The notes under the pieces were generated by a model. The model did no database searches and was not told where the DNA came from. It saw nothing but the letters and a program-made list of their open reading frames with translations. From Neoconidiobolus thromboides FSU 785 (taxonomy: Eukaryota > Fungi > Entomophthoromycota), in NCBI GenBank assembly GCA_025603075.1, contig MU626375.1, forward strand, positions 1 to 64,000: 64,000 nucleotides of DNA. The letters run 5' to 3'. Every line of letters begins with the position of its first letter. Within the stretch, counting starts at the first letter, position 1. Position numbers and translations under genes: made by a program. Shown here in pieces: positions 2,495-59,125 of the stretch.

Positions 2495-2596
2495 TTATGG
2501 GAATGTTTTTTTGATTTCATTATCTTTTTCATTTTTTAAATGCTGTTTAAGTACAAAGATTGTTAGTAGGATTCTTAAACAAATACATCTCCATAT
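2495..2596 (-). mobile_element. MITE copy 2 (diverged)
   Basis: ttatgggaatgtttttttgatttcattatc...aaatacatctccatat. Confidence 0.85.
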
Positions 2597-2816
2597 AGAA
2601 CATTCAATTTAATATCGTCATGCAATTTAACATCAGAAATGGAAATAAATAAAGTTCAACTTTTAATTGGCTGGAAGGGAATTACTAAAAATGGTAGTAT
2701 GCGTTAAAAAAAGGTTCAAGGATGAAAAGTCAAAATGAGCCTATAAAAGAGAAGTTCAGAACTAGATGATAAAGCAACTCACAAGTTTATTTTTTAATTG
2801 TTTTTTGAAGTTTTCA

Positions 2817-3128
2817 ATGGAAGAAGAAAAGGTAGAAAATGTATTGAGAGGGGAGTTTAATTGTGATGAGTGTGCTCGACGCCATAAAAAATGTGATCGA
2901 AAGTTACCCAGTTGTAGTTATTGTATAAGTAAAAAAAAAGCATGTACTAAAAACAGAAAGTTAGTTAATCGAAAAAAATTATATCAATTAGAAGATAAGT
3001 TATATAAATATAAATTGAATAAAAATCAAAAGAAAGAAAGTATACAACCTGATAAAAGAATTGTTTTTAAATATGAGAATCCAAAAGCCAATTTAAACTT
3101 TATTTTAGATGATAAAAAAGAGGTTTAA
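2817..3128 (+). CDS. Short Zn2Cys6 (GAL4-type) binuclear cluster protein, DNA-binding domain only
   Basis: CDECARRHKKCDRKLPSCSYCISKKKAC fits C-x2-C-x6-C-x6-C-x2-C-x6-C. Likely start is MEEEK at 2817. ORF stops after ~103 aa with no middle homology region; a downstream exon cannot be excluded. Confidence 0.7.
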   Translation: MEEEKVENVLRGEFNCDECARRHKKCDRKLPSCSYCISKKKACTKNRKLVNRKKLYQLEDKLYKYKLNKNQKKESIQPDKRIVFKYENPKANLNFILDDKKEV

Positions 3129-4960
3129 GTAATTTACTTTAATATTCATTAGTTGTCTTTTTTCTATCAATCTTGTAAGTCTATCCTTTACCGAATTTCG
3201 TCTTGCCTTATTTTGTTCATCTTTTACTTACTATCTTCTATTACTCCTCCTATTTTCCTTTTGTTAAATCTTAGTCACTATTCTCAAAATTAATATTATT
3301 TTTTATAAATGATGAATCATCTTATCTATTATTGTTGATGGAATATTGAAGCTTTTTAAATAATATAAATGAGATTAATAATAGTATTTTTTTAAACTTT
3401 GATTGACTTTAATTTGTAGTTATTAAACTTATAAAGAATATATTTAACTGTTAAACTAAGGAGTGATATTAAAGTTATTTTGTTTAATTCAAATAATATT
3501 GAATTGAGAATTATTAAGCTCAAATAGTTGACTGTATTTATTTTTTATATTATATACAAGATAAGTTTGATATAAAAATCCTTCAACCAATCAAAACGTA
3601 GTAAGATTTATTATCCCGATATTCACATTCGCGTCTAAAGATAATAGTTCACTATCAAGCATACATAGAACTATCCAAAATTTAGCTATGTGATTTAAAA
3701 TTCATCCTTAATTATTACTTCCTTTTATCAACTTTATAAAAAAACAATGCTTTATTAGAATTTAAGTTCTAAATTTATAAGAGTTACATTATCTAAACTT
3801 TTAATAGTTGAAATTATAGTATTCTATTATACAATATTGAATTAAATAATAAACTATAGGTCAAGAAGATAAAATATCAAAAACAGTAACTTATTTTTTA
3901 ATTTGCGTTGTTCTTTCTTTAAAATAAGGTTAAAATACTAAAAAGGATACTTATCTAGTTGTAAAAATAGATCGCAATTTACTATTTACTACCTTAAATC
4001 AAATAACTTAATTCTAAAGACTGTTATTTGCCATTCACTAAACTTTCTATTTTTGGCTGTTTAAATGATAGCACCATAAAATAATAAAAAACAAACTAAT
4101 TGTTAAATCAAACTGTATAAAAATAACTATAATCATTAAAATTAAAGCTACTTTTCAAATTAAAAGTAAAATTCCCATTAGCATAGAAGTGACTCTGATG
4201 TAACTAAAGGAGGGAGAAAAATAAATTAATATAAATAAAAAAACTCCAAAATCAAAAGATTATTGAAGTATAAGTATTCAAGGTTACTATAAAACTTTTA
4301 AACTTATTAAACTAAATAGTCATAGCAAAAAAAAAGAAACTGTGGAGATGAGATATTAAAAAAGTTACTGATAAAGTAAATCACAGTTTATTAGCTTTAG
4401 TAGCCTATATTAATAACAAATTGTTGGATTTTATTTTAAAATTTTAAAAAGCGATAATAATATTAGAAATAAGTAATTATAACTACTATAATTAGGAATC
4501 TTTTTTACTAATTATAAAAATCGTTAAAAGTTCTGTAAGCTATGTTTTGATTATCAAACACTTATATTTTACACCTTTTTAATAAAAGTTTGTAATGATT
4601 TTTAAATGAATGTAAATTACCTTATAATTTTTTTATGAATTTAAAAATATTTGTTCAATATAAAACTCAGAAAACAAACACAATAGTTTATTAGTTTTCA
4701 TAATGATATTTAAATATTAGCCAATTTCAATAAAAATCTTATACAATTATTATTAATACTAAAAAACTTAATATAACAATTTTATGCTTTTAAAGTCATG
4801 GAATTATTCAAGAAGCTCTCCAGAGCATACAATTGCAACATTTAAGGTATATATTACATTTAAAAAGTAAAATATAGAGGTGCTTTAGTTTCACTCCTTT
4901 TAAGCAAAAAAAAAAAAAGATAATAGATTTTTTAAAAAAGAATATTTTTTGGATAATATA

Positions 4961-5034
4961 CGCTCATAACTGGGATCGAACCAGTAACCTCCCGATTAAC
5001 AGTCGGACGCGCTAGCCAATTGCGCCATACGAGC
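4961..5034 (-). tRNA. tRNA-Asn (GTT), intronless
   Basis: Reverse complement GCTCGTA-TGGCGCAATTGGCTAGCGCG-TCCGACT GTT AATCGGG-AGGTT-ACTGG TTCGATC CCAGT-TATGAGC-G. Paired acceptor stem, A and B boxes, downstream T-run. Confidence 0.95.
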
Positions 5035-7449: not shown

Positions 7450-9162
7450 TCATTTGATCTTAGCTTTCAAATACTCTAAAATAATTTGAATTAACCTTAG
7501 ATTAATTTGGGCAACAAGCTTAGTACAGGGCAATTGACCTAAAGCTTTGAGAAAATTTAATCCTTTTTGGGTCATCGCTTGATTCTTTCCTTCTTTGTCT
7601 CCGTGTCTTACCATAAAAACTAAGCAGAAAGCGATAAGAGAAGCGTCAAAATCAAGGGTATACCGACGATTTAATAAAATGGCATATTCTATAACAGAAT
7701 AGCATTCAGAGAGGGCAAGAGATAAATAATTTGGGCCTAATAACGGAATATTATTATTGAGTGAGGTCTGATAAAGTGATTGAAATTTAGGGTGACAAAA
7801 TTGGATTGAAAATAGGAGAAAATGATTAAAATGGAAAAAAAGATGAATACTATGCTGGTAATTTATAATTGCCGTAATTAAGCTTTGGTTCTGTAAAAAA
7901 GACAAAATATCATCGTAAAAGGTAATATAGTTATCCTTGATTAAAGTCAACTGTTGTGATAATTTAAAAGCAAAAACTCCAAGGTGAATAGGGTCCATTT
8001 GTTGATCTAAATAATTGTGTTTAAATAAACGAAATGAGAACAATAGCTCACCTAAATCATAGTAAAACCCTATTAGTTTTAAAAGACAGTATTGTTTTAC
8101 TTGTTGATCAACATGATAAAATTTGTAACCTTGTCTTTTTATCTTTGTTTGATAGCATTTGTATAGTCGTATCAACTCGTAGGGTTTATCTATTTTTGCT
8201 ACAAAAGACCCGAAAGTCAATAACATTACATTATAAACCATATGTAAGATAGTATATGCTGTTGCCCTTTCCTTCCTTAAGCTCCTACTTAGCCATTTAG
8301 GTGCCTGATTTAGCTGCAAAATAAAGCTACTTCTATAGCAATGGGCTAATAGAATTTCCTTGATACTAATAACCCAAGGAAAAAAGCTAAGGCTAGTGAT
8401 AGCAATGAGGACTACTTGAATCATAGTTAAACTTGATTTTATTCGATGTACTTTGGATAATAATGCAAACAACTTGACTTCAAAAAAACTCATCAAAGCT
8501 TTGACTTCGGGTGTCTGTTCCATCCAACTTAATCCACAAACCAAAATAGTTATCTGTAAACTTTGACTTTTTGTTGTAAATTGAAATTCAGTTTCGTCAA
8601 ATAAAGGTAATATCTTATTATTGTATATAAAATAATTATCAAAGGCTTGCTTTAACACATTATTGATATTAGTTGGTATTATTGAAGGTAGTTTCGGTTT
8701 GATTAATTCTTTTTTTGGCTTTAATATAAGTAAATCTAGTTTCTGAGTAAGCGTTAAAAATAGTGATATACCCTGGTTAGGAATAAATGGGGATGGGTTT
8801 TGAATCAAATTGGTCAAGTTTTCCAACACACTTTTTCTTGGGAACTTATGAAAAACACCTAATACTGAATATGAATATCCATAATCTTTGGGTGACTTTG
8901 GAATAGTTATTTCAGTTACTAGCGAAAACTGATGATTGTTATCCACATGATTTATTCTTCTTTTATTCATTGCCAATATATTTCTTTTATTTTCTCCTTT
9001 TACCTTTGTATATATTATAGTCCTATTTAATGTGCACGGCAGTTTTTTTTTAATACAATTATTACAGAGGGGTAGCACTCTATCACATTTTAAATGGCTT
9101 TGTGTGCACTGATCACATCGATGCGCCCTTACTTTTATGCTTAAATTAGCTGAATCTTCCAT
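7450..9162 (-). CDS. Zn2Cys6 fungal transcription factor (family member A)
   Basis: N-terminal CDQCTQSHLKCDRVLPLCNNCIKKKLPC; Fungal_trans-like segment AFDNYFIYNNKILPLF; intronless, 570 aa. Confidence 0.85.
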   Translation of the reverse strand: MEDSANLSIKVRAHRCDQCTQSHLKCDRVLPLCNNCIKKKLPCTLNRTIIYTKVKGENKRNILAMNKRRINHVDNNHQFSLVTEITIPKSPKDYGYSYSVLGVFHKFPRKSVLENLTNLIQNPSPFIPNQGISLFLTLTQKLDLLILKPKKELIKPKLPSIIPTNINNVLKQAFDNYFIYNNKILPLFDETEFQFTTKSQSLQITILVCGLSWMEQTPEVKALMSFFEVKLFALLSKVHRIKSSLTMIQVVLIAITSLSFFPWVISIKEILLAHCYRSSFILQLNQAPKWLSRSLRKERATAYTILHMVYNVMLLTFGSFVAKIDKPYELIRLYKCYQTKIKRQGYKFYHVDQQVKQYCLLKLIGFYYDLGELLFSFRLFKHNYLDQQMDPIHLGVFAFKLSQQLTLIKDNYITFYDDILSFLQNQSLITAIINYQHSIHLFFHFNHFLLFSIQFCHPKFQSLYQTSLNNNIPLLGPNYLSLALSECYSVIEYAILLNRRYTLDFDASLIAFCLVFMVRHGDKEGKNQAMTQKGLNFLKALGQLPCTKLVAQINLRLIQIILEYLKAKIK

Positions 9163-9859: not shown

Positions 9860-11584
9860 CTAACTTATTTCTTTTCTATAAAACCCTGCCACAATTTCAA
9901 TTAACCTTAAATTAATTCTGGCTGATTGCTGTTTACATGGGAGAGTAGCCATAAAATTAATAAACTTAATGCCTTCCTTTAGCTTCTCTTGATTTAATGG
10001 ATTGAGATATCCAAATCTCAGGATAAGCATCATGCTTAGCGTGATATTAGGACAATCTAAAGTCAATGAGAATTTATGACACAAATAGTTAGCATGTTGG
10101 ATCATGAGATAACAATGTGATAATAGCTGGTGAATAACAGTAACTTGATTGGACTTTAGTTTTACTTTAGAGTTGGTGTTCCAATCTCGATACTCTGGAC
10201 TGTAACACTGAAATAGGTAAACAAGATTCGCAGTGGAATGAAAGAAGAAATAAACGCAATTACAAGCTTGTTCAATTAATTCTATCAACTCTGAGTTAAC
10301 AACATATTTCAATACATGCTTAAAATGTTTGATATATTTTTCCCGAATTTTGATTAACCTTGTTATCAACTTCAGTGCTATCCTATCTATTTGTGATTGG
10401 TCTATATCCTGTCGAATGTTTGTTTCTTTATAAATCCGTAAATAACAATTAAATTCAGAAAGTTCGATATAAAATGAAGTAATATTAACTATATGATATG
10501 TTTTAACTTGCTCGATTTGGTTATAAAATTTAAATGGGTCTAGCTTAATTTTATTCTCAAATTGCTCTAACTTTCTATTAAGTTGCTTTGGCTTATTTGG
10601 AAATGTAAAATAAGAACCAAATATAACTAAAGACATTGAATAGTAAGCATTTAATAAACAATAAGTATGTGCACGGTTGTATTTAAGCTTTGTATTAAAA
10701 TAAGATGGTGATTGATCTAAAGAGAGTATTGAAGAAATTCTATAACAATGAAAAATAAAAAAATGAACGTAAGGGCCAACCCATTTAAAATTTGTTAATC
10801 CAGTAAGAGTTAAAAGTAAAATTTGCACATTTTCTAAGCTTGCTTTGATATTTGATATTTTGCTTAAATATTTAAATAATTTACCTTCATAACATGATAT
10901 TAATTTATTTACAAGTGGTGTCCTCTTCATCCACAGTAATCCGCAAGAGATGATCGTTAGCTTTAAATAAAAGGATAGCGGCTTAAAGTTAAATCCGGCT
11001 TTAATGAATAATGGGAAATATTCGTTGTTATATCTAAAGTAGTTCTCTATTGCTTGTTTGAAAATGACTCTAATTTCATTAAGTTGGTATCTTTCTTTAT
11101 GTAGTTCATTTTCAATATTATTTTGCTGTATAGTGCCTCCACTCAATTTCCGTATAATAGTAACTAATAGGGAGTTACTTTTGATATGAGAAAACGGGGA
11201 AGGGCATTGTACTAAAGTCATTAAGTTTTCGAATCGAACTTTATCTTTGAAACTAATATAATATTTGAATATCAATGAGTTACTTTTAAACTTAGGGGTT
11301 AAAACTTTTGATGGGCTAGGTAAATAATAAGGTTCAAGTTTTAACTGTAACTTATGGCTCATCTTTTCATTTGGATTGAAATCAAAATCAACCTGGTTGC
11401 TTGGTGTCAACTTGAACTTGTTCATATTTTGATTATCGTTATTTCGTTTTTTGACGTTAATTATTTTCCTATTCAGTGTGCACTCTCTGTTTCTTTTTAC
11501 GCATTCTAAGCACCTTGGCAACACCTTGTTGCATTTTTTATGGTTTTTAGTACATTGATCACAGCTATAAACTCTAATTTCCAT
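9860..11584 (-). CDS. Zn2Cys6 fungal transcription factor (family member B)
   Basis: CDQCTKNHKKCNKVLPRCLECVKRNREC; AIENYFRYNNEYFPLF; tandem paralog of 7450-9162. Confidence 0.85.
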   Translation of the reverse strand: MEIRVYSCDQCTKNHKKCNKVLPRCLECVKRNRECTLNRKIINVKKRNNDNQNMNKFKLTPSNQVDFDFNPNEKMSHKLQLKLEPYYLPSPSKVLTPKFKSNSLIFKYYISFKDKVRFENLMTLVQCPSPFSHIKSNSLLVTIIRKLSGGTIQQNNIENELHKERYQLNEIRVIFKQAIENYFRYNNEYFPLFIKAGFNFKPLSFYLKLTIISCGLLWMKRTPLVNKLISCYEGKLFKYLSKISNIKASLENVQILLLTLTGLTNFKWVGPYVHFFIFHCYRISSILSLDQSPSYFNTKLKYNRAHTYCLLNAYYSMSLVIFGSYFTFPNKPKQLNRKLEQFENKIKLDPFKFYNQIEQVKTYHIVNITSFYIELSEFNCYLRIYKETNIRQDIDQSQIDRIALKLITRLIKIREKYIKHFKHVLKYVVNSELIELIEQACNCVYFFFHSTANLVYLFQCYSPEYRDWNTNSKVKLKSNQVTVIHQLLSHCYLMIQHANYLCHKFSLTLDCPNITLSMMLILRFGYLNPLNQEKLKEGIKFINFMATLPCKQQSARINLRLIEIVAGFYRKEIS

Positions 11585-11753
11585 TCTGATAAATTAAAAA
11601 AATCTCACCTTGAAATTTATCAATTCACTAAATTCCTCATAATCAGTTTAATAGCCTTTTATTAGCATTCTTGATACTGTTTCGATTAAAAAAGGAAAAA
11701 GTAAGCTTCTACTTCTCTATAAATTCGCTTAAATAGCTTTTTTAAAATAACGC

Positions 11754-11866
11754 ATAGGGGTGTTTTTTTGGCTTCATCACTTTTTCCATCTTTTAAGCAC
11801 TATTTGAGCGGAAAAATTGTTAGTAAAATTGTTAGTAAAACTGTTAAACATAAAAATACACCCTCA
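11754..11866 (-). mobile_element. MITE copy 3 (with small internal duplication)
   Basis: ataggggtgtttttttggcttcatcac...tagtaaaattgttagtaaaa...aaatacaccctc. Confidence 0.88.
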
Positions 11867-21262: not shown

Positions 21263-23015
21263 TATCTTTTTATCGTTCCACTATTATCTTTTAAAATTTC
21301 TGCTATTGTTTCAGTCATTTTTATATTAAGCTAACTAATTTTCAAGATAAATGGGGATTTGAGCGAAGACATCAAAAGTTGCTTTTCTTTTTAAAGGTAT
21401 TCCGTTGAGTATTTACTATCTCCTCGGTACCGTATTATGAAAACCAAACAGGTAGAAAAAGGTGGATAATCAAGGCCAAGTGTATATTTATGCGAAGCTA
21501 TAGCAATAATACCAGTTAATAAATAATGTTTTATTATTATAGCATTGATATAATTTTGTACACTTGTATTAATGTTTTTATCAAACATATATTCTTCATA
21601 TTTATAAGCCTTTTTTCATTCGATGCATAAAAGTGAATTGAATAAACATAAAAATTAATGTGGAGATAAAAATAAATAAAGCAATTTTGATGATTTTTGA
21701 TAGTTGCTTTCAAATCACAATTTTTCACTTTTAGTAAAATACTATTCATAATATCAGAATATTTTTCTTTAACTGCAAACGTTTTGGATATGATTTCCTT
21801 TAAAACATTACTAAATTTAGATTGATCTTCGACTCCCATTGTCTTCTCTTCAATTAAACGTAAGCTTAAAGAAATTATACTTAATATGTGATAAAATTTC
21901 TGTACTTTTAAAAAACAATATTGTTGAGCTGCTTTTTCATCTATATTTAAACTAACCCAAGCATAACTAAATTTGCTCATAAAATATCTGTTCAGTCTCT
22001 TCAGTTCTAATGGAAATAGAGGTTCAGCAAGTCATAATCCAAAATTTAATGAGATTCCATTGTAAAAAGTATTTAATTTACAATGAGTGTAAACTTGCTC
22101 AGTGTTAATCTCTTTAGAAAGCTTCTTTAGTGATTGACTTAACCTTACTATAGACGATATTATGTAACAATGAAATAAAAGAAGCCCTTTGTTGCTAGAA
22201 ATCCATGGGAAATGTAGAATTCCAGTTATTAATATAAATATTGTTTGTACATTTCCTAAATTGCGTTAAATTTTAGAAACATTCAAGATAAAATTATAAA
22301 GCTTTTCTTTAAGTTATTTAATCGAATTTTTTACAACTTCTGTTTGTTCCATACGCAAAAAAAACATTTAAAAATACTGCTAATTTAAAAGTAAAGGGTG
22401 CGAAGCAAAGGTAAACTTTGTTCCATAAAATAAAGGAAATTCTATATTAACAAATTTAAATTAATACCTACTTGTTTTAAAATAGGTCCAATATCAAGGG
22501 TGGGCTCATTTAGTGTTTTAAATACAAAGGGCAATTTTTTACGATTAGAAGTTATCAAAGCCAATTTATGTGTAAACATAATGGATAGGTTTAGGCTTTT
22601 ACTAAGAAAACATGGTGATAAGTTTTGAAAAAAGTTAAGAAGTTCTCTAATATTGACTTCCTTTGAACTTTACTAAAAATCACAAGGGCATTATGTGGGA
22701 AATTGGAATCCTTTGGTAATTTTAATAGTTGATATTTGATCATTTTAGATTGTGAGTGTTTTGATCTACTTTTTTATTCTACAAAAACAGAATCAACATT
22801 TAAGCTGACTTTAGATTTAATTGTTACTTTTCCTGATTCGTATTCGCTGTGTCCTTTTTTGTTGCATTTAAACTCTGTTTTTAAAGTATATTCTATATAT
22901 TTCTTTATGCATATCATACTTTTTGATAGTAGTCTACCACATTTAAAATGCTTTAAAAATATTAATTACATCTGTATTCTCTTTTATCCAATTTTGATAT
23001 ACTTTGTCGTTCGAT
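21263..23015 (-). pseudogene. Zn2Cys6 family pseudogene (closest to 50563 and 56917 members)
   Basis: ORF fragments 21391-21588 and 21537-21980 match the family C-terminus (HKYTLGLDY...STCLVFIIRY). Upstream IKYQLLKLPKD is retained; start appears as ATC; Zn-cluster Cys partly lost; stops and frameshifts. Confidence 0.88.
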
Positions 23016-23162
23016 AAATTCAAAAGGATTAAAACATTAATTGCAGCTCATTATATAGCACCATAAAGGATTCAAAAAACCCTTTTTTAAAATTCAACTA
23101 AAAAGTAAAGTAAGAATACAAGATCAAATTGTTATAATTTTCCTAATAAATTTGGTCAAACA

Positions 23163-23266
23163 AGTAGTGATGTTTTTTTGTTTCATTACTTTTTCCATCT
23201 TTTAAGCGCTATTTGAGTGGAAAAATTGTTAGTAAAATTCTTAAATACAAAAATACATCCCCAAAT
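23163..23266 (-). mobile_element. MITE copy 6
   Basis: agtgatgtttttttgtttcattactttttccatcttttaagcgctatttgagtgg...aatacatccccaaat. Confidence 0.9.
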
Positions 23267-27237: not shown

Positions 27238-27344
27238 ATATAAAGATATTTTTCTTAATTTTATCACTTTCTCTATTTTTAAGTACTATTTGAATAAAAA
27301 AATTATTAAAAAAATTTTCAAATGAAAAAATATACAACTGTATA
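27238..27344 (-). mobile_element. MITE copy 8, heavily G>A/C>T-eroded
   Basis: atataaagatatttttcttaattttatcactttctctatttttaagtactatttgaataaaaaaattattaaaaaaatttt... is collinear with the consensus. Confidence 0.65.
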
Positions 27345-27522
27345 CTTTTTTATTAGCTAATTACAAATTACAATTTAAAACTAATAAATACATAAAATTA
27401 TATAATAGATATAGATAAGTTTAAAGCTTTAATTTTAACTAAAAATAAGATTTATTTATTTGTTTTTTACTTAATATAAGATCTTAAACTTTTTTTAAGT
27501 ACTTGATAAAAAGAACATTACT

Positions 27523-27627
27523 ACATGGGGGTGTTTTTTTTGACCTCATTACTTTTTCCATCTTTTAAACGCCATTTGAGTGGAAAGATTGTAGTAAAAT
27601 CTTAAACAAAAAAACACATCCCCATAT
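27523..27627 (-). mobile_element. MITE copy 9
   Basis: acatgggggtgttttttttgacctcattac...aaacacatccccatat. Confidence 0.92.
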
Positions 27628-27816
27628 TATCAAAAAGGCTTAGTGGTTTTATTAAAAGTATAGCATCAATAAATAATTTAATAAAAAAGCTTTAAGTTGT
27701 CATACTAGTTTTTTTCATATTTTGATTAAATGTAAATATTAAAATAAAGAGATAAGGTCTTTTGCGATTAGATGATAAATATTTTTGTAGAAATCGAAAA
27801 AAATTCTGAATTAACT

Positions 27817-28390
27817 ATATGGGAGTGCTTTCTTTAACTTCTGTGAAATCTGGTACTCAGTGTTTGGAGTCAAGAACAGCTATTGCTGGATTGACTACAC
27901 TATAAGTCGAAAGGTTTTAGTTTATGTGACTAAGATAGACTTGGATTATGAGAAATAACACGTAATAGGTTACAAACTATATAAGACAAATAGAATAGAC
28001 AATACTAATGTAAATCTACGTAAAATATTATTAAGTTTTCTTAATGGCTTTATTAAATGTTCGAGATATCAAGGAACAATTCATTTAAAAAGCCTCGAAC
28101 TACTATACTCTGTAAACTCTTTTATACTCTGAAAAGTATAAATATCAAAATGAGAAGATAATATTCTTTGGGATGGAGCTAGAAATTCTCATAGCAAATC
28201 AAACTAAGAACGTGGGATTGATTTTCTCTGAACTCGAGAACACAACAGCTTAGGCGATTGTTATTCTATAATTAACCATGGGACTGACAAAGCGATATTT
28301 CACACTTCTTTATTTTTTCCATCTTTTAAGCGCTATTTGAGCGGAAGATTTGTTAGTAAAATTCTTAAACACAAAAGCACATCCTCATAT
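27817..28390 (-). mobile_element. MITE copy 10, split by a 463-bp insertion
   Basis: Left part atatgggagtgctttctttaacttc (27817-27841); right part cttctttattttttccatc...cacatcctcatat (28305-28390). Confidence 0.88.
27842..28304. mobile_element. Solo-LTR-like insertion (463 bp) with 4-bp TSD
   Basis: Begins TGTGAAAT and ends ATTTCACA (8-bp inverted termini, TG...CA). Flanked by CTTC at 27838-27841 and 28305-28308. Internal TATAAATA near 28137; no ORF. Confidence 0.8.
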
Positions 28391-28524
28391 TGTGTAAATC
28401 ATAATCAAGTTGCAAAATTGTAACTAATTTTATAAGCAAGTTAGATGATTGTTATATTATGACTAATCATAGAGCTGATAAAGTAGTATTCCATATTTAT
28501 AATAATAAAGGAATTATTAGAAAC

Positions 28525-28630
28525 ATATGGGGATGTATTTTTGTATTTAAGAATTTTACCAACAAATTTTCCACTCGAACAGCGCTTAAAAGATGGAAAA
28601 AATAATGAAGTAAAAAAAACACTCCCATAT
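28525..28630 (+). mobile_element. MITE copy 11
   Basis: atatggggatgtatttttgtatttaag...aaaaaaaacactcccatat. Confidence 0.93.
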
Positions 28631-28968
28631 TAAATATCATACTTATAAATATTTTTACTAAAAGTTTTTATATCTTTATTAAATAAGCTATTAGATAAAA
28701 TAGAAACTATAGTTTCATATACCTCAATATCAACAATTAAATTTTGCATAAAAAAAGTAAATATGTAAATATGTATTTTATCTAATTTAAATGCTATTAT
28801 AATTTCAATTTGGACAAATAAATAACATACACACGTTCATAAAAACCATACAAATTTAATTTTTTTTATAAATGGGCCAATAATAAAATTTAATATCATC
28901 CAATTATTGAACAAAATATCCTGTTTTCACCTAACTGACTACAGTTTAATATTTAATGTATATACTAG

Positions 28969-29014
28969 ACTTTGCTATAGCATGTTATTGGCCAATAACA
29001 TGCTATAGCAAAGT
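28969..29014. repeat. Perfect 46-bp spacerless palindrome
   Basis: ACTTTGCTATAGCATGTTATTGG|CCAATAACATGCTATAGCAAAGT. Confidence 0.95.
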
Positions 29015-29501
29015 TCAATCATTGAATAAAATACTCATCTTTATCTAGATAATTACAACTTAATACTTAGAGTGAATATTAAAGATTATTCCCAAATTAT
29101 TAATAATGTAGTATAATACCATTTTTATATGTAAGAATATCAATTCTAAAAATCAAGAGCTTTATTGTCTCAAAGCTAGTCTCAGTTATTTGGAGAGTAT
29201 CACTAATGGCTACACATCCGTTATGGAAATTCATAGTTTTAAACCTATTGGCTCAAAATCAAGAACATTTGAGTTGTGGCGATGTTGGTATGAAGATTTT
29301 CATCCTTTTTTTGACTGTTATCATAACAAATATTTGCAAATTTTGTAAGCTTTGGGATTCCTTAAAGATTCTACTACTAGCTCTGACTTTTGAATAAAGG
29401 GCTTTACTTTTTTAGGAGATTCTTATAAAACATTACGAGTTTATTTGCTTGCCATTTGCTAAATCCTTGGCCTGGATCTTCCACCTTACTTTTTACCTTC
29501 T

Positions 29502-29598
29502 GTATGGAAATGTATTTTCTGTTTGAGAATTTTACTAATAATCTTTCCACTCAAATAGCGTTTGAGAGATGGAAAAAGTATTGAAACAAAAAAAACAT
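29502..29598 (+). mobile_element. MITE copy 12 (left arm of inverted dimer; right terminus truncated)
   Basis: gtatggaaatgtattttctgtttgagaattttactaat...gaaacaaaaaaaacat. Confidence 0.87.
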
Positions 29599-29704
29599 AT
29601 ATGGAGATGTTTTTTTAACTTCATTACTTTTTTCCTCTTTTAAGCACTGTTTGAGTGGAAAGATTATTAGTAAAATTCTTAAACAAAAAAATACATACCC
29701 ATAT
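29599..29704 (-). mobile_element. MITE copy 13 (right arm of inverted dimer)
   Basis: atatggagatgtttttttaacttcattac...aatacatacccatat. Confidence 0.9.
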
Positions 29705-36843: not shown

Positions 36844-36946
36844 AAATATAAATAAAATATAGAGATTGATATTATATAGTATATTGCCCCACTTTTTATT
36901 ACTTTTCATATTATTATTAACTATACAAATATCATTTAACTTAACT

Positions 36947-39142: not shown

Positions 39143-39935
39143 AATAAGTTTATCAATAGTTATACAAAAGTAACTGAAATAATAGAACACGTAATATTAA
39201 AATGACAGCACAAATATACCATATAACGTGTGGACTCTTTAACAAATTATTTTCATTATTTATGCTATTTATAATGGTATTTTATAATAATAAAATATTT
39301 TGTTTTTTAAAATACTAGAATAACTTTAATAAAAATCCTTAAGATTAATTATGTAATGAAAACAGGCTCCAGTTGAATTAATTATATGTGTTATTAGAAA
39401 CTATTATAATCATTAAATTAAGTAAAAAATAATCCATTTCTACCATATTTAGCTTCGATTATTAGGTTTATTGTATGTGCTTTTTAAATGAAAAACTATA
39501 TATAACCAAATATCAAATTATAGTATGATAATATATTGTCACTTAAATAATTAAGCTTGAAAACATAACATCATAAGACTTTAAGGCTCTAAAAAAAGAA
39601 ATAATGGTATTGCTGTTCTTACATAAATAAAAAAAGATTAAAAATTGTAATTGTATAATATTATCATCAACTTTAGAAGATTAGTTTTTAATATTTCTAT
39701 CTAATATATTTTATATTTAATAACAAATAATAAATAAATCCTTCATTTGCTCTGGTTTATAATATAAACTAAAGATAATTATTTCATCATAAAATTACTG
39801 TGACTAATGATCATAGTCAAAGAGCCATCATATTTTAAATATTTTAATAATATTTTTTTTTAATAAAAAGACGATTAACCAGACTTGCAATACAATTAAG
39901 TACTAAATCTAAAATAATAACAATTCAAAGTAATT

Positions 39936-40042
39936 ACATGGGGATGATTTTTTTTGATTTCATTATTTTTTCCATCTTTAAGCACTATTTGGGCGGAAAG
40001 ATTGTTAATAAAATTCTTAAACACAAAAGTACATCTCCATAT
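39936..40042 (-). mobile_element. MITE copy 16
   Basis: acatggggatgatttttttgatttcatt...gtacatctccatat. Confidence 0.92.
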
Positions 40043-46268: not shown

Positions 46269-48053
46269 AAAACTTTGGTACCAGGCACAAACAGTCCAAA
46301 AACCCTTTATGATTTGCCTTTATTTAAAGAAAAAGAGATCAGTAATAATGAAGATAATAATAGTCAATAGTAATAAATAAGATGATAATAGTAAGTTATC
46401 AGTGGAATAGGCGATATTAAGAACAATGAGAGAAATCGGGTGACTTGTTTTAATAATAACAAATATAATATTTATAATCTACAAATGTAACCCGGAAAAA
46501 GAAAAATCCCTAACCATTATTACTGAATCTGTCTTTATTTAGCCAATTGATTTATTGCATACTAAGAATAATTACTACTATAATACCGATGCATTTGCTT
46601 ATCGTATATAACCTAAAGTAAACTTCACTTCAGTAGCGTTCAAAAAAGCTCATGTCAAAGGTGTAAGGGGTATGAGTATGATTAGAGAAAAATGTCATTG
46701 ATATCAAAACTGTCAGTTTCGAATAAGATCAATATATATAAAAAGTTTTAAAATTTAAGCTGTTAATGTAAGATGCTTAGATAGTCATTATTGATATAAA
46801 GTTTTAAAGTTTTCTTTTCAAAATAAAGTTTTTTATAATAGTATATACAAATACTTTCGTTTAAGAATTCAATAAAAAAATAACTTTTGAGTTAAAAAAT
46901 GAATAAAATATTGGCACTATAAATATATCCGCAAGAGCTCAAATAAAAATAATAAAAATATTACTATTAAAAGGTGAATGTGATAGGTAATAAATCAAGT
47001 TACTTTATATATTTATTTACTACAATAATATGTTAACTGAATGAATTGGATGAGAATAACTTTATCTTGGATATAAAAATCAAACAAAAGTAGAAAATTA
47101 CAAAAAGTATGGAAATATTTGTCTAAATTTAAATTAATAAGTTTAGCAACAAATTAAAGAATAAAGTATTAATATACATCAAACAAGAAAACAAAATGAA
47201 CCTTCCAAGGAAAAGTATAAATACAGTTTATAAAAAAAAATAAATCCTTTTTTAAATGTAAAATGACAGCCGAAATTTGGTATTTTATCAAACGTATTCC
47301 TAGATTAAGTACCTCGATTATTGAATTTAAGAAAATGACAACTTTACAAGAGTATGGTTATTGCTATTGAAACACACTCTGAGCTTTGCTATTTATAATG
47401 TAAGTTAATTCAAATCAAATAAGAAGATAGCAAAAATAAAGGGCATAAAAGAGTCAAAGAACCAATTTGAAATGAGAATTTAATTAATGGCGAGTACCAC
47501 CTTGAACGAAAGCAGTTTAAGGGAAATTAGAAACATCAACGTCAGATCAAGAACCAAAAGTCACTTAATAGCAGTTACGTTTTAGCTTAATGTAAGTTTA
47601 TACAGGAAACTGGAGCACATTCCTTAACATCGTTATCTCAGGGTTTTTAGTATGTTATTTATTTTTAAATACCTGTAAACTCTGAATAGTCCTTCTAACA
47701 TAGCCAAGATATCATGCAAAAATCAGCTATAAACTTAGCTAGATTATCATCCTTTTATTTATTTCACATGACAAAAAAGAGTCAAACTCAATATGTATTC
47801 GGTTAAATCAAATATATTTTAGACTAAAGCAAGCTGGAATTTAAACAGTCAATCAAGTATCTTAGCGGCTTTGAAGATTTGATGAAAATAATACAGATAT
47901 TCTTATTATTATATTTGTAGGGTTGCCTTTGAGTAAGTGTGTTTTAAAATATTATAATCCTACTCCAAGCTTTATTGTCTATGAAAATGTCTTTTTGCCA
48001 GCAGATCAATTTTTGCTCATTTTTGAACATGCATTTACTAAAAGTAGAAGATA

Positions 48054-48157
48054 GAATGGGGATGTATTTTTATGTTTAAGAATTTTAATAACAATTTTTC
48101 CGCTTAAATAGCGCTTAAAAATGAAAAAGATAATGAAGTCAAAAAACACTCCTAAAT
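48054..48157 (+). mobile_element. MITE copy 19
   Basis: gaatggggatgtatttttatgtttaag...gtcaaaaaacactcctaaat. Confidence 0.92.
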
Positions 48158-48236
48158 ATTATTGACATATAGTAAGCAAATTCAAAAATAAATTTTTCTT
48201 TTTTGCAAATTAAGCACTTACCTAATTAGATGCAAC

Positions 48237-49964
48237 ATGGAAAAAAGAGCTTATCGGTGCGATCAATGTACAAAAAGACATGTAAAATGTGACAAGCTAA
48301 CTCCCAAATGTACGACTTGTACTAGGCGTAAAGAGGATTGTACATTAAATCGAGTAATAATTTATAATAGGAAGAAAGATTTTACAACAGAAAAGTTTTC
48401 AAGATCAAAAGGGAATAACAAAATTGAAAGTATAGTATATTCTATCAAATACAATAGCGACTTGATTCAAACTACATCTCAAAAGTTTATTACCAATAAA
48501 GTAATAAAAATTTTAAAGCATCCAAAAGATCACACGTCTCTATACCCAGTTTTAGCGATATTTCATAGGTTTACTAGGAAAAGTTCTTTGGAAAATTTAA
48601 TGACTTTGACCCAGAACCCTTCTCCATTTACGCGTAGCATAGACATTTCAATATTTGTTAACCTTGCAGAAAAATTACAAGCTCATGTTCGAAGGCCAAA
48701 GCTTAAAAAGATACCTTTGGAAGTGCCAAGAGAAGCTAAAGTAGATATAGCTCCAATCCTAAAGGAAGCAATAGCAAATTATTTTAAGTACAACAATACC
48801 TTTTTTCCATTGTTTATTGAGGAAGAATTTAATTTTTCACAATGTCCTTTTTATTTGAAATTAGCTATTTTATCATGTGGACTTGTGTGGATGGAACAAA
48901 CAAAAACTGTACAAAATTTATCAAAGTATTTCGAGGGAAAGTTATTTGAGTATTTACATATAGTTTATCGAATCAACCCAACTTTAGAGAATATACAAGT
49001 GTTACTAATTACAGTTACAAGCTTAACATCATTTTCATGGGTATGTAGCCTTTATGTTTCATTTATTGATCATTGCTACAGGATTTCATCTATACTGTCA
49101 TTACATTCAAATCCAAAATTTTTAAAGCAAAAATGTAAAATTGAGCGCAGTTTTGCATACTGTTTATTAAGTGTTTTTTATTGTGGAGCATTAATGGTTT
49201 TTGGATCTTTTGTTACACTACCTAATATTGCTATAGAACTACTAAATTTGGAAAAAGAATACAAACTAAAAGTATTTAGTGGACACACTAAGTATCCATT
49301 TGATGATTTAGAAATTAAAAGATATTACTCTCTAAAATTAATCCAATTTTATAATGAACTATGTTTTATTTTATTCCCACTTCGCTTATTAAAAGAAAGA
49401 TGTATGAAGCAGGCAATAACTGAGGTTGAGCTTGCATCAAGTTCATTTAAGATAATAAGCTCAATAACGAAAGTAAGAGTCAAGTATATAGATTTTTTTG
49501 GCAACATCTTCTTATTTACAAAGAAATCGAGTTTATATGAAATGGCTAAAGACCTTCAAAATTGTGTTAATTTCTTCTATCACTATATACGCTTTTTCGT
49601 TTATTCATTTCAATTTTATTTTCCAAAATATAGGAATCATATTGAAAAGAAGGATAAAAATATAGTGATAATGGAACCTTGGAATGGAAAAGATTATGCT
49701 AAGCTTACTCTTTCAGAATGTTATTCAATAATTGATTTTGCATATTTACTTTCACATAAATACGTACTTACTTTAGACTGTTCTCAAATCTCTATTTGCT
49801 TGGTTTTTATGCTAAGATATGGTGGAAGCAATGAGCAATGTAAAATAAAACTCCAGAAAGGATTAAAGTTACTCCAATATTTATCCACATTTCCTTGTAG
49901 TGCAACTATAAGCAAGCTTAATTTAAACTTATATGGAACTATATCTAATGATTTAAAGAAATAA
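48237..49964 (+). CDS. Zn2Cys6 fungal transcription factor (family member C)
   Basis: CDQCTKRHVKCDKLTPKCTTCTRRKEDC; AIANYFKYNNTFFPLF; intronless, 575 aa. Confidence 0.87.
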   Translation: MEKRAYRCDQCTKRHVKCDKLTPKCTTCTRRKEDCTLNRVIIYNRKKDFTTEKFSRSKGNNKIESIVYSIKYNSDLIQTTSQKFITNKVIKILKHPKDHTSLYPVLAIFHRFTRKSSLENLMTLTQNPSPFTRSIDISIFVNLAEKLQAHVRRPKLKKIPLEVPREAKVDIAPILKEAIANYFKYNNTFFPLFIEEEFNFSQCPFYLKLAILSCGLVWMEQTKTVQNLSKYFEGKLFEYLHIVYRINPTLENIQVLLITVTSLTSFSWVCSLYVSFIDHCYRISSILSLHSNPKFLKQKCKIERSFAYCLLSVFYCGALMVFGSFVTLPNIAIELLNLEKEYKLKVFSGHTKYPFDDLEIKRYYSLKLIQFYNELCFILFPLRLLKERCMKQAITEVELASSSFKIISSITKVRVKYIDFFGNIFLFTKKSSLYEMAKDLQNCVNFFYHYIRFFVYSFQFYFPKYRNHIEKKDKNIVIMEPWNGKDYAKLTLSECYSIIDFAYLLSHKYVLTLDCSQISICLVFMLRYGGSNEQCKIKLQKGLKLLQYLSTFPCSATISKLNLNLYGTISNDLKK

Positions 49965-50306
49965 CTTTCCATAATAAATAGATGTCAAATATTGTTACTT
50001 TATAATTAACTTTCTGAAATGTAGTTTATTTTTTAAGAGTTAAATTTAAGTATTTAATTAAATAACACTTCCTATGAATTATGTCAATCAATACAAAAAC
50101 TCATGTAGATGTATGATGATCATTTTTTATAGGTGTAGCTTTTATAACATATTCAAACGAAGTTTTAATGCTTTTTGTATAATGCAATGCTCTAAATAAA
50201 ATATAAACTATCCTGTTAAATAATAGATTTTACTTACAAAAACGAAACATTTATGAAATATTTGTACATGTTCCATATAGATTTTAAATAATAATCGCTT
50301 TAATAA

Positions 50307-50406
50307 ATATGGGGATGTACTTTTTTGTTTAGAATTTTACTAGCAATTTTTCCACTCAAATAGCGCTTAAAAAACAAAAAGTAATAAAACCAAAACATCC
50401 CCGTAT
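50307..50406 (+). mobile_element. MITE copy 20
   Basis: atatggggatgtacttttttgtttagaattttac...caaaacatccccgtat. Confidence 0.9.
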
Positions 50407-50562
50407 ATTTATTTAATTGGCTAAATTTTATAGTGACTAATTATAATTTAACTTTTTTTGTAACCAAAGTTTCATTTTTATAATTGCGTAGCAAATAGGA
50501 TTTATTCAAGTTATATACATGCTATATAGTATATTATTTTGGTCTTGCATGTTTTTAGGCTT

Positions 50563-52314
50563 ATGAAACAACAAAATAGTTTAGATTCAAGTAAAAGAGG
50601 GCATAGATGTGATCAATGTGTTAAAAGACATCTCAAGTGTGATAGGTTGCTACCAAAATGCACAATGTGTATAAAGAAAGATATAGAATGTACTTTAAAT
50701 AGGGAAATTATATACAATAAAAAAGCAAATATTGAATATGCATCAGGAAGGAAAATTGTTAAAACAATATCTAAAGCCACTTCAATAGTTGATTGTATTC
50801 ATGCAAAAGGAAAACGTAATTTAAAACAGCCTCAATCTAAAGAAATCAAATATCAACTACTAAAATTGCCAAAAGATTACAATTTTTCACACAGTATTCT
50901 TGGAATTTTTAACAAGTTTGAAAGAAAATCGTTATTAGAGAATCTGTTAATTTTTATTCAAAATCCTTCTCCATTTTTTCCTAGTAAAGGTTTAAATCTT
51001 TTCATGATATTAACAAATAAGTTAGGCTTGTTAGCATCCAAAACTAGGAGATTGGCTTTTATACCTGAAGTACCAAACAAAAGCACTTTTGATATTGGAC
51101 CAATTTTAAAACAAGCTGTAACTAATTACTTTAAATTTGTTAATGTGGAATGTCCCTTATTCGATGAGACAAGATTTGATTTTACTTCACGTTCTTTCCA
51201 TTTAAAATCGACAATATTTGTGGGTGGTCTTTTTTATATGGATCAAACGGAAACTGTAAAGAATTTGGTTAAGTATTTTGAAGAAAAGCTTTATAATTTT
51301 GTTTCGAATGTCCCTAGAATTAAACCTAATTTAGAGAATATACAAATAATACTAATATTAGTGACTAGCTTTACTAAATTTGAATGGATTGCCAATATTA
51401 GAGAATTCCTTTTGTTTCATTGCTATAGAATGTCGTTTGTGATAGGATTAAGCCAATCGTCAAAGAAATTTTTTAAAGAGACCAATGCTGAACGAATTTA
51501 CACTTACTGTCTATTAAGTGTATATTATAATGGATTCATATTAAATCTTGGATCTTATATCGCTGAACCTGTATTTCCACTGCAGATGAATAGGTTGGAT
51601 AACCATTTTAAGAGTAAATTTTCTCATTATGCTTTTGATTTTGACAAAGATGACAAGAATATACAACAATGTTGTTTCTTTAAATTGCATGAATTTTATT
51701 ATATTATAAGCACGCTTTTTTTCGACTTACATTTAATTAAAGGGGCAAACATAAAGGAAATTGAAGACTATGTGAAATTTAATAGTGTTCTAAAAAAGCT
51801 CTTATTTAAAATACTTGTGGTTAAAGAAACGTATACCAGGGTTATGAATAATATTTTGGTAAAAATCAAAAATGAAAAATCTAAGTCAACTATTAAGGAT
51901 TATCAAAATTGCATTAACTATTTTTATCATCATACTAACTTTTATATACATTCAATCCGATTCAATGCATCTAAAGAAAAAAAAGTTTATGAATACGAGG
52001 AATATATGTTTGATAATAATATTAATACAAACGTACTAAATCATATTAAGATTATAACTAAAGAATATTATCTTGTAATTGATAGTATCGCTAAAACCTC
52101 ACATAAATATACTCTTGGCCTTGATTATGCAATTTTATCTACTTGTCTAGTTCTGTTGATACGATATGGAGGAAAGGAAGTTGAAACTATAATGTATATT
52201 CAAAAAGGGAAGGACTTATTAGAATTTTTACAAAAATCACCACTTTCTGCAAGGATATGTAAGTTTAACTTAGCACTAATTGGCATTATTACAGAATCGT
52301 TAAAAATCCTCTAA
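50563..52314 (+). CDS. Zn2Cys6 fungal transcription factor (family member D)
   Basis: ATG at 50563 (MKQQNSLDSSKRGHRC); CDQCVKRHLKCDRLLPKCTMCIKKDIEC. Confidence 0.87.
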   Translation: MKQQNSLDSSKRGHRCDQCVKRHLKCDRLLPKCTMCIKKDIECTLNREIIYNKKANIEYASGRKIVKTISKATSIVDCIHAKGKRNLKQPQSKEIKYQLLKLPKDYNFSHSILGIFNKFERKSLLENLLIFIQNPSPFFPSKGLNLFMILTNKLGLLASKTRRLAFIPEVPNKSTFDIGPILKQAVTNYFKFVNVECPLFDETRFDFTSRSFHLKSTIFVGGLFYMDQTETVKNLVKYFEEKLYNFVSNVPRIKPNLENIQIILILVTSFTKFEWIANIREFLLFHCYRMSFVIGLSQSSKKFFKETNAERIYTYCLLSVYYNGFILNLGSYIAEPVFPLQMNRLDNHFKSKFSHYAFDFDKDDKNIQQCCFFKLHEFYYIISTLFFDLHLIKGANIKEIEDYVKFNSVLKKLLFKILVVKETYTRVMNNILVKIKNEKSKSTIKDYQNCINYFYHHTNFYIHSIRFNASKEKKVYEYEEYMFDNNINTNVLNHIKIITKEYYLVIDSIAKTSHKYTLGLDYAILSTCLVLLIRYGGKEVETIMYIQKGKDLLEFLQKSPLSARICKFNLALIGIITESLKIL

Positions 52315-52757: not shown

Positions 52758-52864
52758 ATATAGAGATGTTTTTCTTGGCTTCATTACTTTTTCTATCTTT
52801 TAAGTGCTATTTGAGTGAAAAAATTATCAGCAAAATTCTTAAATACAAAAATACATCACCATAT
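52758..52864 (-). mobile_element. MITE copy 21 (first unit of tandem dimer)
   Basis: atatagagatgtttttcttggcttcattac...aatacatcaccatat. Confidence 0.92.
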
Positions 52865-52954
52865 GGGAATGTTTTTTTGGCTTATTTTTTCCATCTTTTA
52901 AGCACTACTTGAGTGGAAAAATTGTTAGTAAAATTCTTAAATATATCCCTATAT
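52861..52954 (-). mobile_element. MITE copy 22 (second unit; shares ATAT with copy 21)
   Basis: atatgggaatgtttttttggctt...cttaaatatatccctatat. Confidence 0.9.
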
Positions 52955-56750: not shown

Positions 56751-56855
56751 ATATGAGAATATCTTTTTGGTTTCACCATTTTTTCTGTTTTTAAGCGCTA
56801 CTTAAGTAGAAAGATTGCTAGTAAAATTCTTAAACAGAAAAATAAATCCCCATAT
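56751..56855 (-). mobile_element. MITE copy 23
   Basis: atatgagaatatctttttggtttcacc...aataaatccccatat. Confidence 0.9.
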
Positions 56856-56916
56856 GTTACTTTAAATTGCTTTTCAAACATCAAGCTTATATTAAATTAG
56901 TATGAAAGTAAATAAG

Positions 56917-58782
56917 TTATGGTTTTATTGATTTTATGTTATTACTCAAAGACTCAGTTATAAGTTCAATTAATTTTAAATTTAACCCACATACCTTTAA
57001 AGCAAAAGGTAATGTCAATGAGGATTCTAATAGTCCCTTTCCTTTTTTAATGTATTTTAAAATTTCATCATTATTTCTTCCATATCGTATTATAAAAACC
57101 AAACATGTTGAAATAAGAGGATAATCAAGAGTAAGAGTATATTTGTGATAACTTACAGCAGCACTATCAATTACTAAATAGCACTGTTTGAGCGTATCTT
57201 TAATACGATTTAATATACTTATATTAATATTCTTATCAAGCTTATGTTCTTTATATTCATACGCTTTCTTTTCTTCAGAAACATCAAAATTAACAAAACT
57301 AATATAAAAGTTAATATGATGAAAAAAATAAACTATACAATTTTGATAATCCTCGATCGTTAATTTTAAATCATAGCTATTGATAAAAGGTAAAAATTCA
57401 GTCATAACAGTAATGTATTCTTCTTTAACTGCGAATGTTTTAAACGTAAGTCTTGATAGAAAGCTATTTAATTTCATCTGATCATCACTTCCTTTTATCT
57501 TTTTCTCTTTGATTAGTCGTAAATCAAAATATAGCGTACTTGTTATATAATAAAATTCTTGAAGCTTTAAAAAACAGTATCTTTGGATATGTTTATCTTC
57601 TTTGTTGAAATCAATATTAGAGAGAGAAAGTTTACTTCTAAAATGCCTATTTAATTTCTTTAATCCCAATGGAAATACAGGCTCAGCAATATATGATCCA
57701 AAACTTAATAAGATTCCATTGTAAAAAGAATTTAATACGCAGTAAGTATAAGTTCGTTCAATGTTGGCCACTTTAGATAACTTCTTTGGTGGTTGACTCA
57801 ATCCTATTATAAATGACATTCTATAGGAATGAAACAAAAGGTAATCTCTAATACCACCAATCCATGAAAAACATGGAATTCCAATTATTAGTATAAGTAT
57901 TATTTGTATATTTTCTAAACTGGGCTTAATTCTAGGGACATTTGAAACAAAATGATAAAGCTTTCCCTCAAAATAACTAATTAGTTTTTTTACGATTTCC
58001 GTTTGCTTCATATAAAAGAGACCACCTGTAAATATTGCCGATTTTAAATTAAAAGAACGTGAAGTAAAATCAAACCTTGTTTCATCAAACAAAGGAATTG
58101 TTTTATTAATTGACGTAAAATAATTGGTTACTGCTTGCTTTAAAATTGGTCTAATATTAAAGGTGTTTTCATTTGGTACTTCTGGTACAAATATTAGCCT
58201 CTTAGGTTTGGATGCCAACAAACCTAACTTATCCGTTAGTATAATAAAAAGATTTAAGCCTTTACTAGGAAAATATGGCGACGGATTTTGAATAAAATTT
58301 AACAAATTTTCTAATAATGATTTCCTCTTAAATTTACTAAATATACCAATAATATTATATGAGAAATCATAATCCTTTGGTAACTTTAGTAATTGATGTT
58401 TAGTTTCTTTTGACAATTTTAATAACTGGTTTTCATTTTTATCTTTTAATTTAACTGCCTGAGTTTTGTTTTCTTCTGGTTGAAACATTTTAGGAGCAAT
58501 TACAGCCTCTTTTTTTGAAGTGAAGCTAACATTGACAACCTTAAATCTAAATTTATCTTTTCCAAAGGCTCTGTAATTACGTCTAATTCCCAAGTGCCCA
58601 GCTCCATACTCGGTGTCTTCGCTTTTATTATATATGACTTCTCTATTTAAGGTACATTCTATCTTTCTTTTTATACAATTTAAGCATTTAGGTAATACTC
58701 TATCACATTTAAGGTGCTTTTTAACACATGAATCACATCTATGTCCTCTTCTACTAAGCTTTAAACTATTTCTCTGCTCCAT
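56917..58782 (-). CDS. Zn2Cys6 fungal transcription factor (family member E)
   Basis: CDSCVKKHLKCDRVLPKCLNCIKRKIEC; long stretches nearly identical to member D (PSKGLNLF, PILKQAVTNYF, FDETRFDFTSRSF). Confidence 0.88.
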   Translation of the reverse strand: MEQRNSLKLSRRGHRCDSCVKKHLKCDRVLPKCLNCIKRKIECTLNREVIYNKSEDTEYGAGHLGIRRNYRAFGKDKFRFKVVNVSFTSKKEAVIAPKMFQPEENKTQAVKLKDKNENQLLKLSKETKHQLLKLPKDYDFSYNIIGIFSKFKRKSLLENLLNFIQNPSPYFPSKGLNLFIILTDKLGLLASKPKRLIFVPEVPNENTFNIRPILKQAVTNYFTSINKTIPLFDETRFDFTSRSFNLKSAIFTGGLFYMKQTEIVKKLISYFEGKLYHFVSNVPRIKPSLENIQIILILIIGIPCFSWIGGIRDYLLFHSYRMSFIIGLSQPPKKLSKVANIERTYTYCVLNSFYNGILLSFGSYIAEPVFPLGLKKLNRHFRSKLSLSNIDFNKEDKHIQRYCFLKLQEFYYITSTLYFDLRLIKEKKIKGSDDQMKLNSFLSRLTFKTFAVKEEYITVMTEFLPFINSYDLKLTIEDYQNCIVYFFHHINFYISFVNFDVSEEKKAYEYKEHKLDKNINISILNRIKDTLKQCYLVIDSAAVSYHKYTLTLDYPLISTCLVFIIRYGRNNDEILKYIKKGKGLLESSLTLPFALKVCGLNLKLIELITESLSNNIKSIKP

Positions 58783-59020
58783 AGACTGAAAAATATATAA
58801 ATCATTATGTAATAAGTTGTTTAAACAATTTTAGCAAATACCCAATTAAAAAGTTAATCTTTACTTAAAGTATAAATTCAAATTATTCACTAATTTTGTT
58901 AAAGGCTAGCAAATTAAATAGAGTAATTTCCCAAAATTATGTCATACTTTATGCAAAATTATACTTTAACTAGCATTAAACTAATTTTTTATTCTATATT
59001 TGTTAAAAAGCCCCATTAAA

Positions 59021-59125
59021 ATATGGGAGTGTTTTTTTTAACTTCATTATTTTTTCCATTTTTGAACGCTATTTAGCGGAAAAATTGTTAGTAAAATTCT
59101 TAAACACAAAAATACATCCACATAT
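59021..59125 (-). mobile_element. MITE copy 24
   Basis: atatgggagtgttttttttaacttcatt...aatacatccacatat. Confidence 0.93.

Follow-up and report, generated by a model that had tools for sequence, protein, structure and literature searches.

Why should a short transposon relic stand just upstream of almost every member of one transcription factor family? The question is raised by a stretch of 64,000 nucleotides from the fungus Neoconidiobolus thromboides FSU 785 (assembly GCA_025603075.1, contig MU626375.1, positions 1 to 64,000; hereafter the window), which holds seven genes or gene remnants of a Zn2Cys6 (zinc cluster) transcription factor (TF) family together with many copies of a miniature inverted-repeat transposable element (MITE). 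The original prediction held that a copy precedes nearly every family member, mostly with the same end facing the gene, and that the element might wire the family into an auto- or cross-regulatory loop. Our analysis of the window, and of ten other contigs that carry paralogues, shows that the clustering of copies at five to six TF starts on contig MU626375.1 is real and statistically strong, and that it is a local oddity of this one contig: the MITE does not mark the gene family as a whole.

Evidence for the clustering came from comparing the TF genes with everything else in the window. Six of the seven family members – genes B, C, D and E, a pseudogene, and a truncated open reading frame (ORF) restricted to the DNA-binding domain (the DBD-only ORF) – have a copy within 250 bp upstream, against one of the 17 other ORFs and genes (Fisher P=3.5e-4). 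When 25 elements were scattered randomly over the non-genic DNA of the window (36.4 kb), six or more family matches arose in only 4 of 20,000 trials (P=2e-4). With the number of copies in each spacer held fixed, the chance that all six fall within 250 bp of a TF start is ~1.4e-4 (a hand product of per-spacer chances), and under the empirical upstream rate of 3/76 observed elsewhere (see below) the excess has P ~3e-8. The placements read from the sequence in the original prediction were correct (Table 1), including the sole non-family case, a reversed copy upstream of a GH25 pseudogene, and the lack of a copy at gene A, where even a permissive nhmmer search (E<=10) found no MITE upstream. A search beside the TF-proximal copies of the window, with the main copy masked, found no second relic. 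Three of the seven promoter-proximal copies adjoin dead genes, namely the two pseudogenes (TF and GH25) and the truncated ORF.

Orientation is a lesser matter. If the end of the element carrying ATATGGGRGTGTTTTTTT is called the head, then the head faces the gene at B, the pseudogene, C, D and E, and the DBD-only ORF is faced by the tail. The shared orientation is thus there to be seen, but it carries little statistical weight of its own (P=0.06 for five of five; P=0.22 for five of six).

The claim that the pattern extends to nearly every member of the family fared differently. Our comparison set comprised ten other contigs around paralogues (L002-L011), 207 kb in all, with 15 family members of known start. 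None of these 15 has a copy within 250 bp upstream, and the contrast with the window is marked (6/7 versus 0/15, P=9e-5). In seven of them the upstream spacer holds a copy farther out, at 385-1088 bp; the head faces the gene in four and the tail in three. Decayed copies do not account for the difference: permissive nhmmer searches of the 500 bp upstream of these 15 members and of gene A found no MITE relics, and BLAST of the upstream 500 bp of the other members against all sampled DNA found, besides the MITE, one single match and no other repeat family. The pattern is not seen in two other tandem clusters of the family, one of four members in 18 kb (L006, 599-18756) and one of two adjacent members (L010, 10001-14535). 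Outside the window, the 250 bp that precede a start codon are depleted for the MITE (3 of 76 genes, where 11.0 were expected; P=0.002), and the 250 bp that follow a stop codon are neutral (8 of 80, where 9.7 were expected).

Table 1. Features of the window: MITE copies close to gene starts, members of the Zn2Cys6 family, and the leader intron of gene C.
Feature	Coordinates	Strand	Evidence
MITE copy, 170 bp upstream of DBD-only ORF, tail end facing	2495..2596	+	nhmmer E=1.6e-20
DBD-only ORF, truncated family member (120 aa, Zn_clus only)	2766..3128	+	Pfam Zn_clus E=3e-6; family profile E=3e-15
Zn2Cys6 gene A	7450..9162	-	Pfam; no MITE in 697-bp upstream spacer even at E<=10
Zn2Cys6 gene B	9860..11584	-	Pfam Zn_clus
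MITE copy, 168 bp upstream of B, head facing	11752..11866	+	nhmmer E=2.6e-25
Zn2Cys6 pseudogene, close to E; start codon lost, frame in pieces	21284..23016	-	family profile matches on five ORF pieces; 73-76% DNA repeats with E; alignment
MITE copy, 147 bp upstream of pseudogene, head facing	23163..23266	+	nhmmer E=4.8e-29
MITE copy, 188 bp upstream of GH25 pseudogene, reversed; sole non-family case within 250 bp (1/17)	39935..40042	+	nhmmer E=1.6e-26
MITE copy, 82 bp upstream of C, head facing, within transcribed leader of C	48056..48155	-	nhmmer E=5.7e-26; RNA contigs
58-nt GT..AG intron in 5' leader of C	48172..48229	+	joint 48171 to 48230 in X2, X3, X4 (second strain)
Zn2Cys6 gene C, 575 aa, transcribed	48237..49964	+	Pfam; NCBI gene call; RNA contigs
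MITE copy, 156 bp upstream of ATG of D and ~93 bp upstream of its mRNA 5' end, head facing	50307..50407	-	nhmmer E=4e-24; RNA contigs
Zn2Cys6 gene D, 583 aa from ATG at 50563, transcribed	50563..52314	+	Pfam; alignment; RNA contigs
Zn2Cys6 gene E, 621 aa	56917..58782	-	Pfam; NCBI gene call
MITE copy, 238 bp upstream of E, head facing	59020..59125	+	nhmmer E=5.2e-27

A critical issue is whether the copies were inherited together with the genes. In a maximum-likelihood tree D and E fall in a clade (100/100) with five paralogues from other contigs that have no nearby copy, B and C are sisters, and A stands separate. The nesting of D and E among MITE-less paralogues means that MITE state follows the contig and not the gene tree. 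For all gene pairs but D-E (0.61), identity at fourfold-degenerate sites is what random sequence would give (0.26-0.49; composition alone predicts 0.34); the TF-proximal MITE copies, by comparison, are 84-92% identical to one another. Nor does MITE similarity follow the genes: the copies of the sister genes D and E (86%) are among the least similar, those of the distant genes C and E reach 91%, and the nearest relative of each TF-proximal copy is a non-TF copy, often from another contig – the copy at E, for example, is 96% identical to one on L003. There are no private variants common to the five TF-proximal copies. MITE tree and gene tree are thus incongruent and, as the original prediction had supposed, passive co-duplication is insufficient. 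These sequence comparisons show that the copies beside the Zn2Cys6 genes of the window are separate, fairly recent insertions from a common pool, which did not descend together with the genes.

The flanks qualify this picture at one point only. The DNA between MITE and ATG had been described as not alignable, which holds for most pairs but not for D and E, whose proximal promoters are clearly homologous over ~140 bp (z=9.2, 0/300 shuffles). In D this homology extends as far as the edge of the MITE; in E it breaks off 98 bp before reaching the element. The distal flanks of the two genes are unrelated, and no flank homology was seen elsewhere. Shared downstream insertions in L004 and L005 were also considered as a candidate case of common descent and rejected, the 3' flanks being non-homologous and the insertions hence independent.

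The element itself is a generic and very abundant non-coding DNA transposon relic. It is ~107 bp long, with imperfect terminal inverted ends (ATATGGGGRTGTWTTTTT / AAAAAWACAYCCCCATAT) found in both orientations; the ends are of the GGGGRTGT... type and are flanked by ATAT-type 4-bp sites. The 18-mer by which the element was first recognised occurs 21 times in the window at <=3 mismatches, where 0.25 occurrences are expected, and an oriented nhmmer model raises the count to 25 copies. A further 59 lie in the ten other contigs, giving 84 copies in ~271 kb on 11 contigs, at a density per intergenic kb of 0.69 in the window and 0.57 elsewhere. Most copies have ATAT on both sides, and a few have concordant AAAT..AAAT or ACAT..ACA; adjacent copies have a single ATAT between them, and no shared insertion-site motif was seen in the flanks. 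Sola2 elements make 4-bp AT-rich target duplications of the form AWWT, with ATAT, AAAT and ATTT reported (PMC3627910). By its short inverted ends and the 4-bp AT-rich sequence on both sides the N. thromboides element tentatively resembles Sola2, bearing in mind that the ATAT may itself belong to the inverted repeat.

Three further features of the element deserve mention. Seven copies are packed into 2.9 kb at 27245-30084, among them pairs that overlap or stand head to head with a single ATAT in common (29502/29598, as also at 52758/52860); the element thus frequently inserts at or next to copies of itself. At each of its two CpG sites, about half of the 76 aligned copies have decayed to TpG or CpA (one site: CG 36, CA 23, TG 14; the other: TG 33, CG 27), a pattern that fits methylation-driven change of C to T or a change resembling repeat-induced point mutation (RIP). 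Finally, a called gene of 132 aa on L002 (120-2463) spans 2.3 kb with four MITE copies in its 'introns' and is probably a spurious model.

The genes beside which these copies lie belong to a genuine lineage-specific Zn2Cys6 expansion that is fast-diverging, intronless and so far found only in this species. The Pfam Zn(2)-Cys(6) cluster (PF00172) scores above cut-off in six ORFs of the window – A to E and the DBD-only ORF – and the seventh member, the pseudogene, is recognised by the family profile. The five full-length proteins A to E share 29-40% pairwise identity, except for D and E at 61%. An exhaustive profile search at E<=1e-10 gave at least 46 representatives, and all ten whose source was looked up come from N. 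thromboides FSU 785. The family profile also matches the Lac9, Gal4, Hap1 and Cep3 chains of the PDB. The window has a G+C content of ~25%, and outside 38237-59964 its genes are annotated from ORFs and Pfam only; a 476-aa MFS ORF has no exact counterpart among recorded gene products. In C and D the synonymous to non-synonymous differences between two strains number 5:4 and 7:7, respectively, with no stops, which suggests moderate constraint.

Two observations on the family stand apart from the MITE. The NCBI model of D starts at 50665 and gives a protein of 549 aa that loses the zinc cluster; the ATG at 50563 retains it, and this longer form is supported because RNA contigs begin at ~50500. 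Elsewhere, cytochrome P450 genes often adjoin family members (L004 5721-7665; L005 6858-8807, 12679-14621 and 16832-18768; L008 16461-17872; L011 16710-18823), as do flavodoxin-like reductase genes in L003 and L008; family members in such company may be pathway-specific regulators of small oxidative gene clusters.

The relationship of the element to transcription could be followed at C and D by means of contigs from four RNA runs, three of them (X2, X3 and X4) from a second strain. The contigs cover the two genes and not the spacers between genes, and because the spacers are uncovered the signal is transcript rather than contaminating DNA. At C, contigs traverse the whole MITE (48058-48171 joined to 48230-49944; 48094-50009), and in two runs the contig ends at the distal edge of the element; the contigs break inside the repeat, so that the exact mRNA start of C is not fixed by them. 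At D, contigs start at 50500 (two runs), 50532 and 50537, downstream of both the MITE and a TATA-like run. In these two genes, then, the element has no fixed place relative to the mRNA: it lies inside the leader of C and upstream of the start of D. The RNA hairpin that the element could form in the leader of C is unremarkable (z=-0.57).

The same runs revealed two further aspects of transcription around the MITE. Upstream of the copy at C, three of the four runs cover a stretch of at least ~750 bp without an ORF of 50 aa or more (~47295-48056), at depths from half that of C to almost the same. The stretch represents either an extended C leader or a non-coding RNA in its own right, ending in the MITE. 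Over MITE sequence (48056-48155, 50307-50407 and 52758-52954) RNA word depth is 10-20 times that of neighbouring genes, and many genomic copies must therefore be transcribed, probably in leaders and trailers.

If the element served the family as a regulatory module, its putative binding site might be expected to bear some mark of it. The core does contain the CGG half-site to which the original prediction drew attention, and the site is intact in three of the six TF-proximal copies; it is, however, no better kept there than in the remainder (22 of 70, P=0.39). Of the 76 aligned copies 25 have CGG here, most of the others having TGG, TAG or TGA, and the element's other CpG has decayed likewise. 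The element holds one CGG/TGG half-site only; solved complexes of the Gal4, Ppr1 and Hap1 type use paired triplets. In overall sequence the TF-proximal copies are among the better-kept ones, 0.90-0.93 identical to the consensus, with a mean pairwise identity of 0.862 versus 0.812 (P=0.02 when compared with all copies, 0.07 with those of the window). None of the three family-wide proposals – oriented targeting of the promoters, a conserved shared cis-module, or an auto-regulatory loop wired by a transposable element – is supported by these comparisons. Against them stand the missing association at the 15 paralogues elsewhere, which include the closest relatives of D and E, the lack of private variants, the unexceptional retention of CGG, the single half-site and the differing position of the MITE relative to the mRNAs of C and D.

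What, then, placed the copies on this contig? The account that we favour, with a confidence that is evenly balanced, is that of insertions into the tolerated promoters of a redundant TF cluster. The element would insert readily into open, AT-rich promoter DNA, and such insertions would normally be purged, which would explain why start codons on the ten other contigs have fewer copies than expected in the 250 bp before them. Insertions would survive where the harm is small, that is, beside the three dead genes already named and likewise beside members of a large, redundant and moderately constrained TF cluster. The shared orientation would most likely be chance or a mild filter acting after insertion. 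Several facts weigh against this account. Tolerance alone gives a uniform rate of ~16% per gene and not 6/7, and an insertion preference for these promoters must presumably be assumed in addition. The 15 equally redundant paralogues elsewhere have no such copy at a similar MITE density, and why this contig was affected and others, for example the four-member cluster of L006, were spared stays unexplained. There is, moreover, a weak sign of local amplification (within-locus identity 0.821 versus 0.812, P=0.04), all five full-length cases share one orientation, and the TF-proximal copies are, as noted, slightly more alike than random sets. The pattern could also be plain coincidence picked after the fact, in that a dense MITE met a gene cluster and both the 250-bp cut-off and the membership list were chosen once the data had been seen. 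The flat result of independent replication (0/15, orientation 4:3), the weak orientation statistic and the large number of windows (485 in this genome) and kinds of pattern that were screened all speak for such an accident; we nonetheless consider it unlikely, since P=2e-4 under uniform placement and ~3e-8 under the empirical rate would be hard to reach by chance even with thousands of implicit tests.

In a cluster-specific exaptation the MITE would have been kept, oriented, beside B to E as a shared cis-acting piece – a binding site, leader or start site – producing a regulon or an auto- or cross-regulatory loop. The strong local enrichment, which persists with copies per spacer fixed, the orientation of the full-length members, the good preservation of the TF-proximal copies and the inclusion of the whole element in the leader of C, with contigs ending at its distal edge in two runs, speak for such a history. 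We judge it improbable all the same, given its absence at 15 paralogues, the single, indifferently kept CGG half-site, the lack of private variants, the start of the mRNA of D ~93 bp downstream of an element that the mRNA of C includes, and the like appearance of copies beside dead genes; in the Fusarium precedent, furthermore, the MITE is dispensable for expression (PMC3599309). A more elaborate version, in which copies from a burst of the Sola2-like MITE were directed to the clustered Zn2Cys6 promoters, or retained there by selection, in one orientation and so built a cluster-specific regulon with a shared leader or upstream module, strikes us as quite improbable; a possible route would be that TFs of the cluster, bound at their own promoters, guide or retain the element. 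Very doubtful is the relocation of TF genes as MITE-flanked segments, by composite transposition or recombination between MITEs, with the element marking the segment edge. The TF genes of the window indeed do not form one tandem clade, the nearest relatives of D and E lying on other contigs; a copy flanks each of C, D and E at either end, and the promoter homology of D and E stops exactly at the MITE edge in D. Yet in E it stops short of the element, B and the pseudogene are without a nearby downstream copy, the constant ATAT flanks are uninformative on composite transposition, fixed orientation is not predicted, and no donor sites are known. Lastly, the idea that a single ancestral unit of MITE and TF gene was passively co-duplicated is largely refuted and by a wide measure improbable. 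It is arguable for D and E only, which share a homologous proximal promoter and an element in the same orientation; even there the genes, at 0.61, are far more diverged than MITEs at 86%, and for the other pairs synonymous sites are saturated, the trees disagree, distal flanks are unrelated and the closest paralogues have no element.

Comparison with known systems helps to define what has been found. Like Gal4-type Zn2Cys6 TFs, the N. thromboides proteins have an N-terminal cluster of six cysteines, detected by Pfam as Zn_clus in 21 of 24 aligned members, and one of the 24 also matches the Pfam model of the TF middle homology region (Fungal_trans, PF04082, E=7.7e-9); the family differs in being lineage-specific, fast-diverging and intronless, with bodies that for the most part have no Pfam match. 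The PdMLE1 element in the CYP51B promoter of Penicillium digitatum is reportedly a promoter-proximal MITE insertion that changes expression, and there, as here, the start of a fungal gene has a MITE no more than a few hundred bp away. That case, however, is a single insertion with a measured effect on expression, whereas in N. thromboides C and D differ in where the element lies with respect to the mRNA start.

Had the family-wide claim stood, an early-diverging fungus would have offered a rare and clean example of a TF family wired into a loop by a transposon. The claim fails, and what is left is a statistically real but local pile-up of insertions in the promoters of a redundant TF cluster, set against the background fact that on ten other contigs the MITE is depleted before starts and not after stops; together, pile-up and depletion amount to a small natural experiment on insertion-tolerant promoters. 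The closest precedent is that of the mimp MITEs in the promoters of the SIX effector genes of Fusarium oxysporum, deletion of which leaves expression unchanged (Schmidt et al. 2013, PMC3599309). In both cases a short non-autonomous DNA element recurs upstream of one class of genes in repeat-rich fungal DNA. The genes are TF genes here and secreted effectors there, and the elements and the fungal phyla are unrelated. Whereas the mimp association is strong, and wide enough for new effectors to be predicted from it, the N. thromboides pattern is confined to one 66-kb contig, with 0/15 elsewhere; in both fungi the association is unexplained, and it is to the mimp-effector association in Fusarium that the pile-up described here runs parallel.

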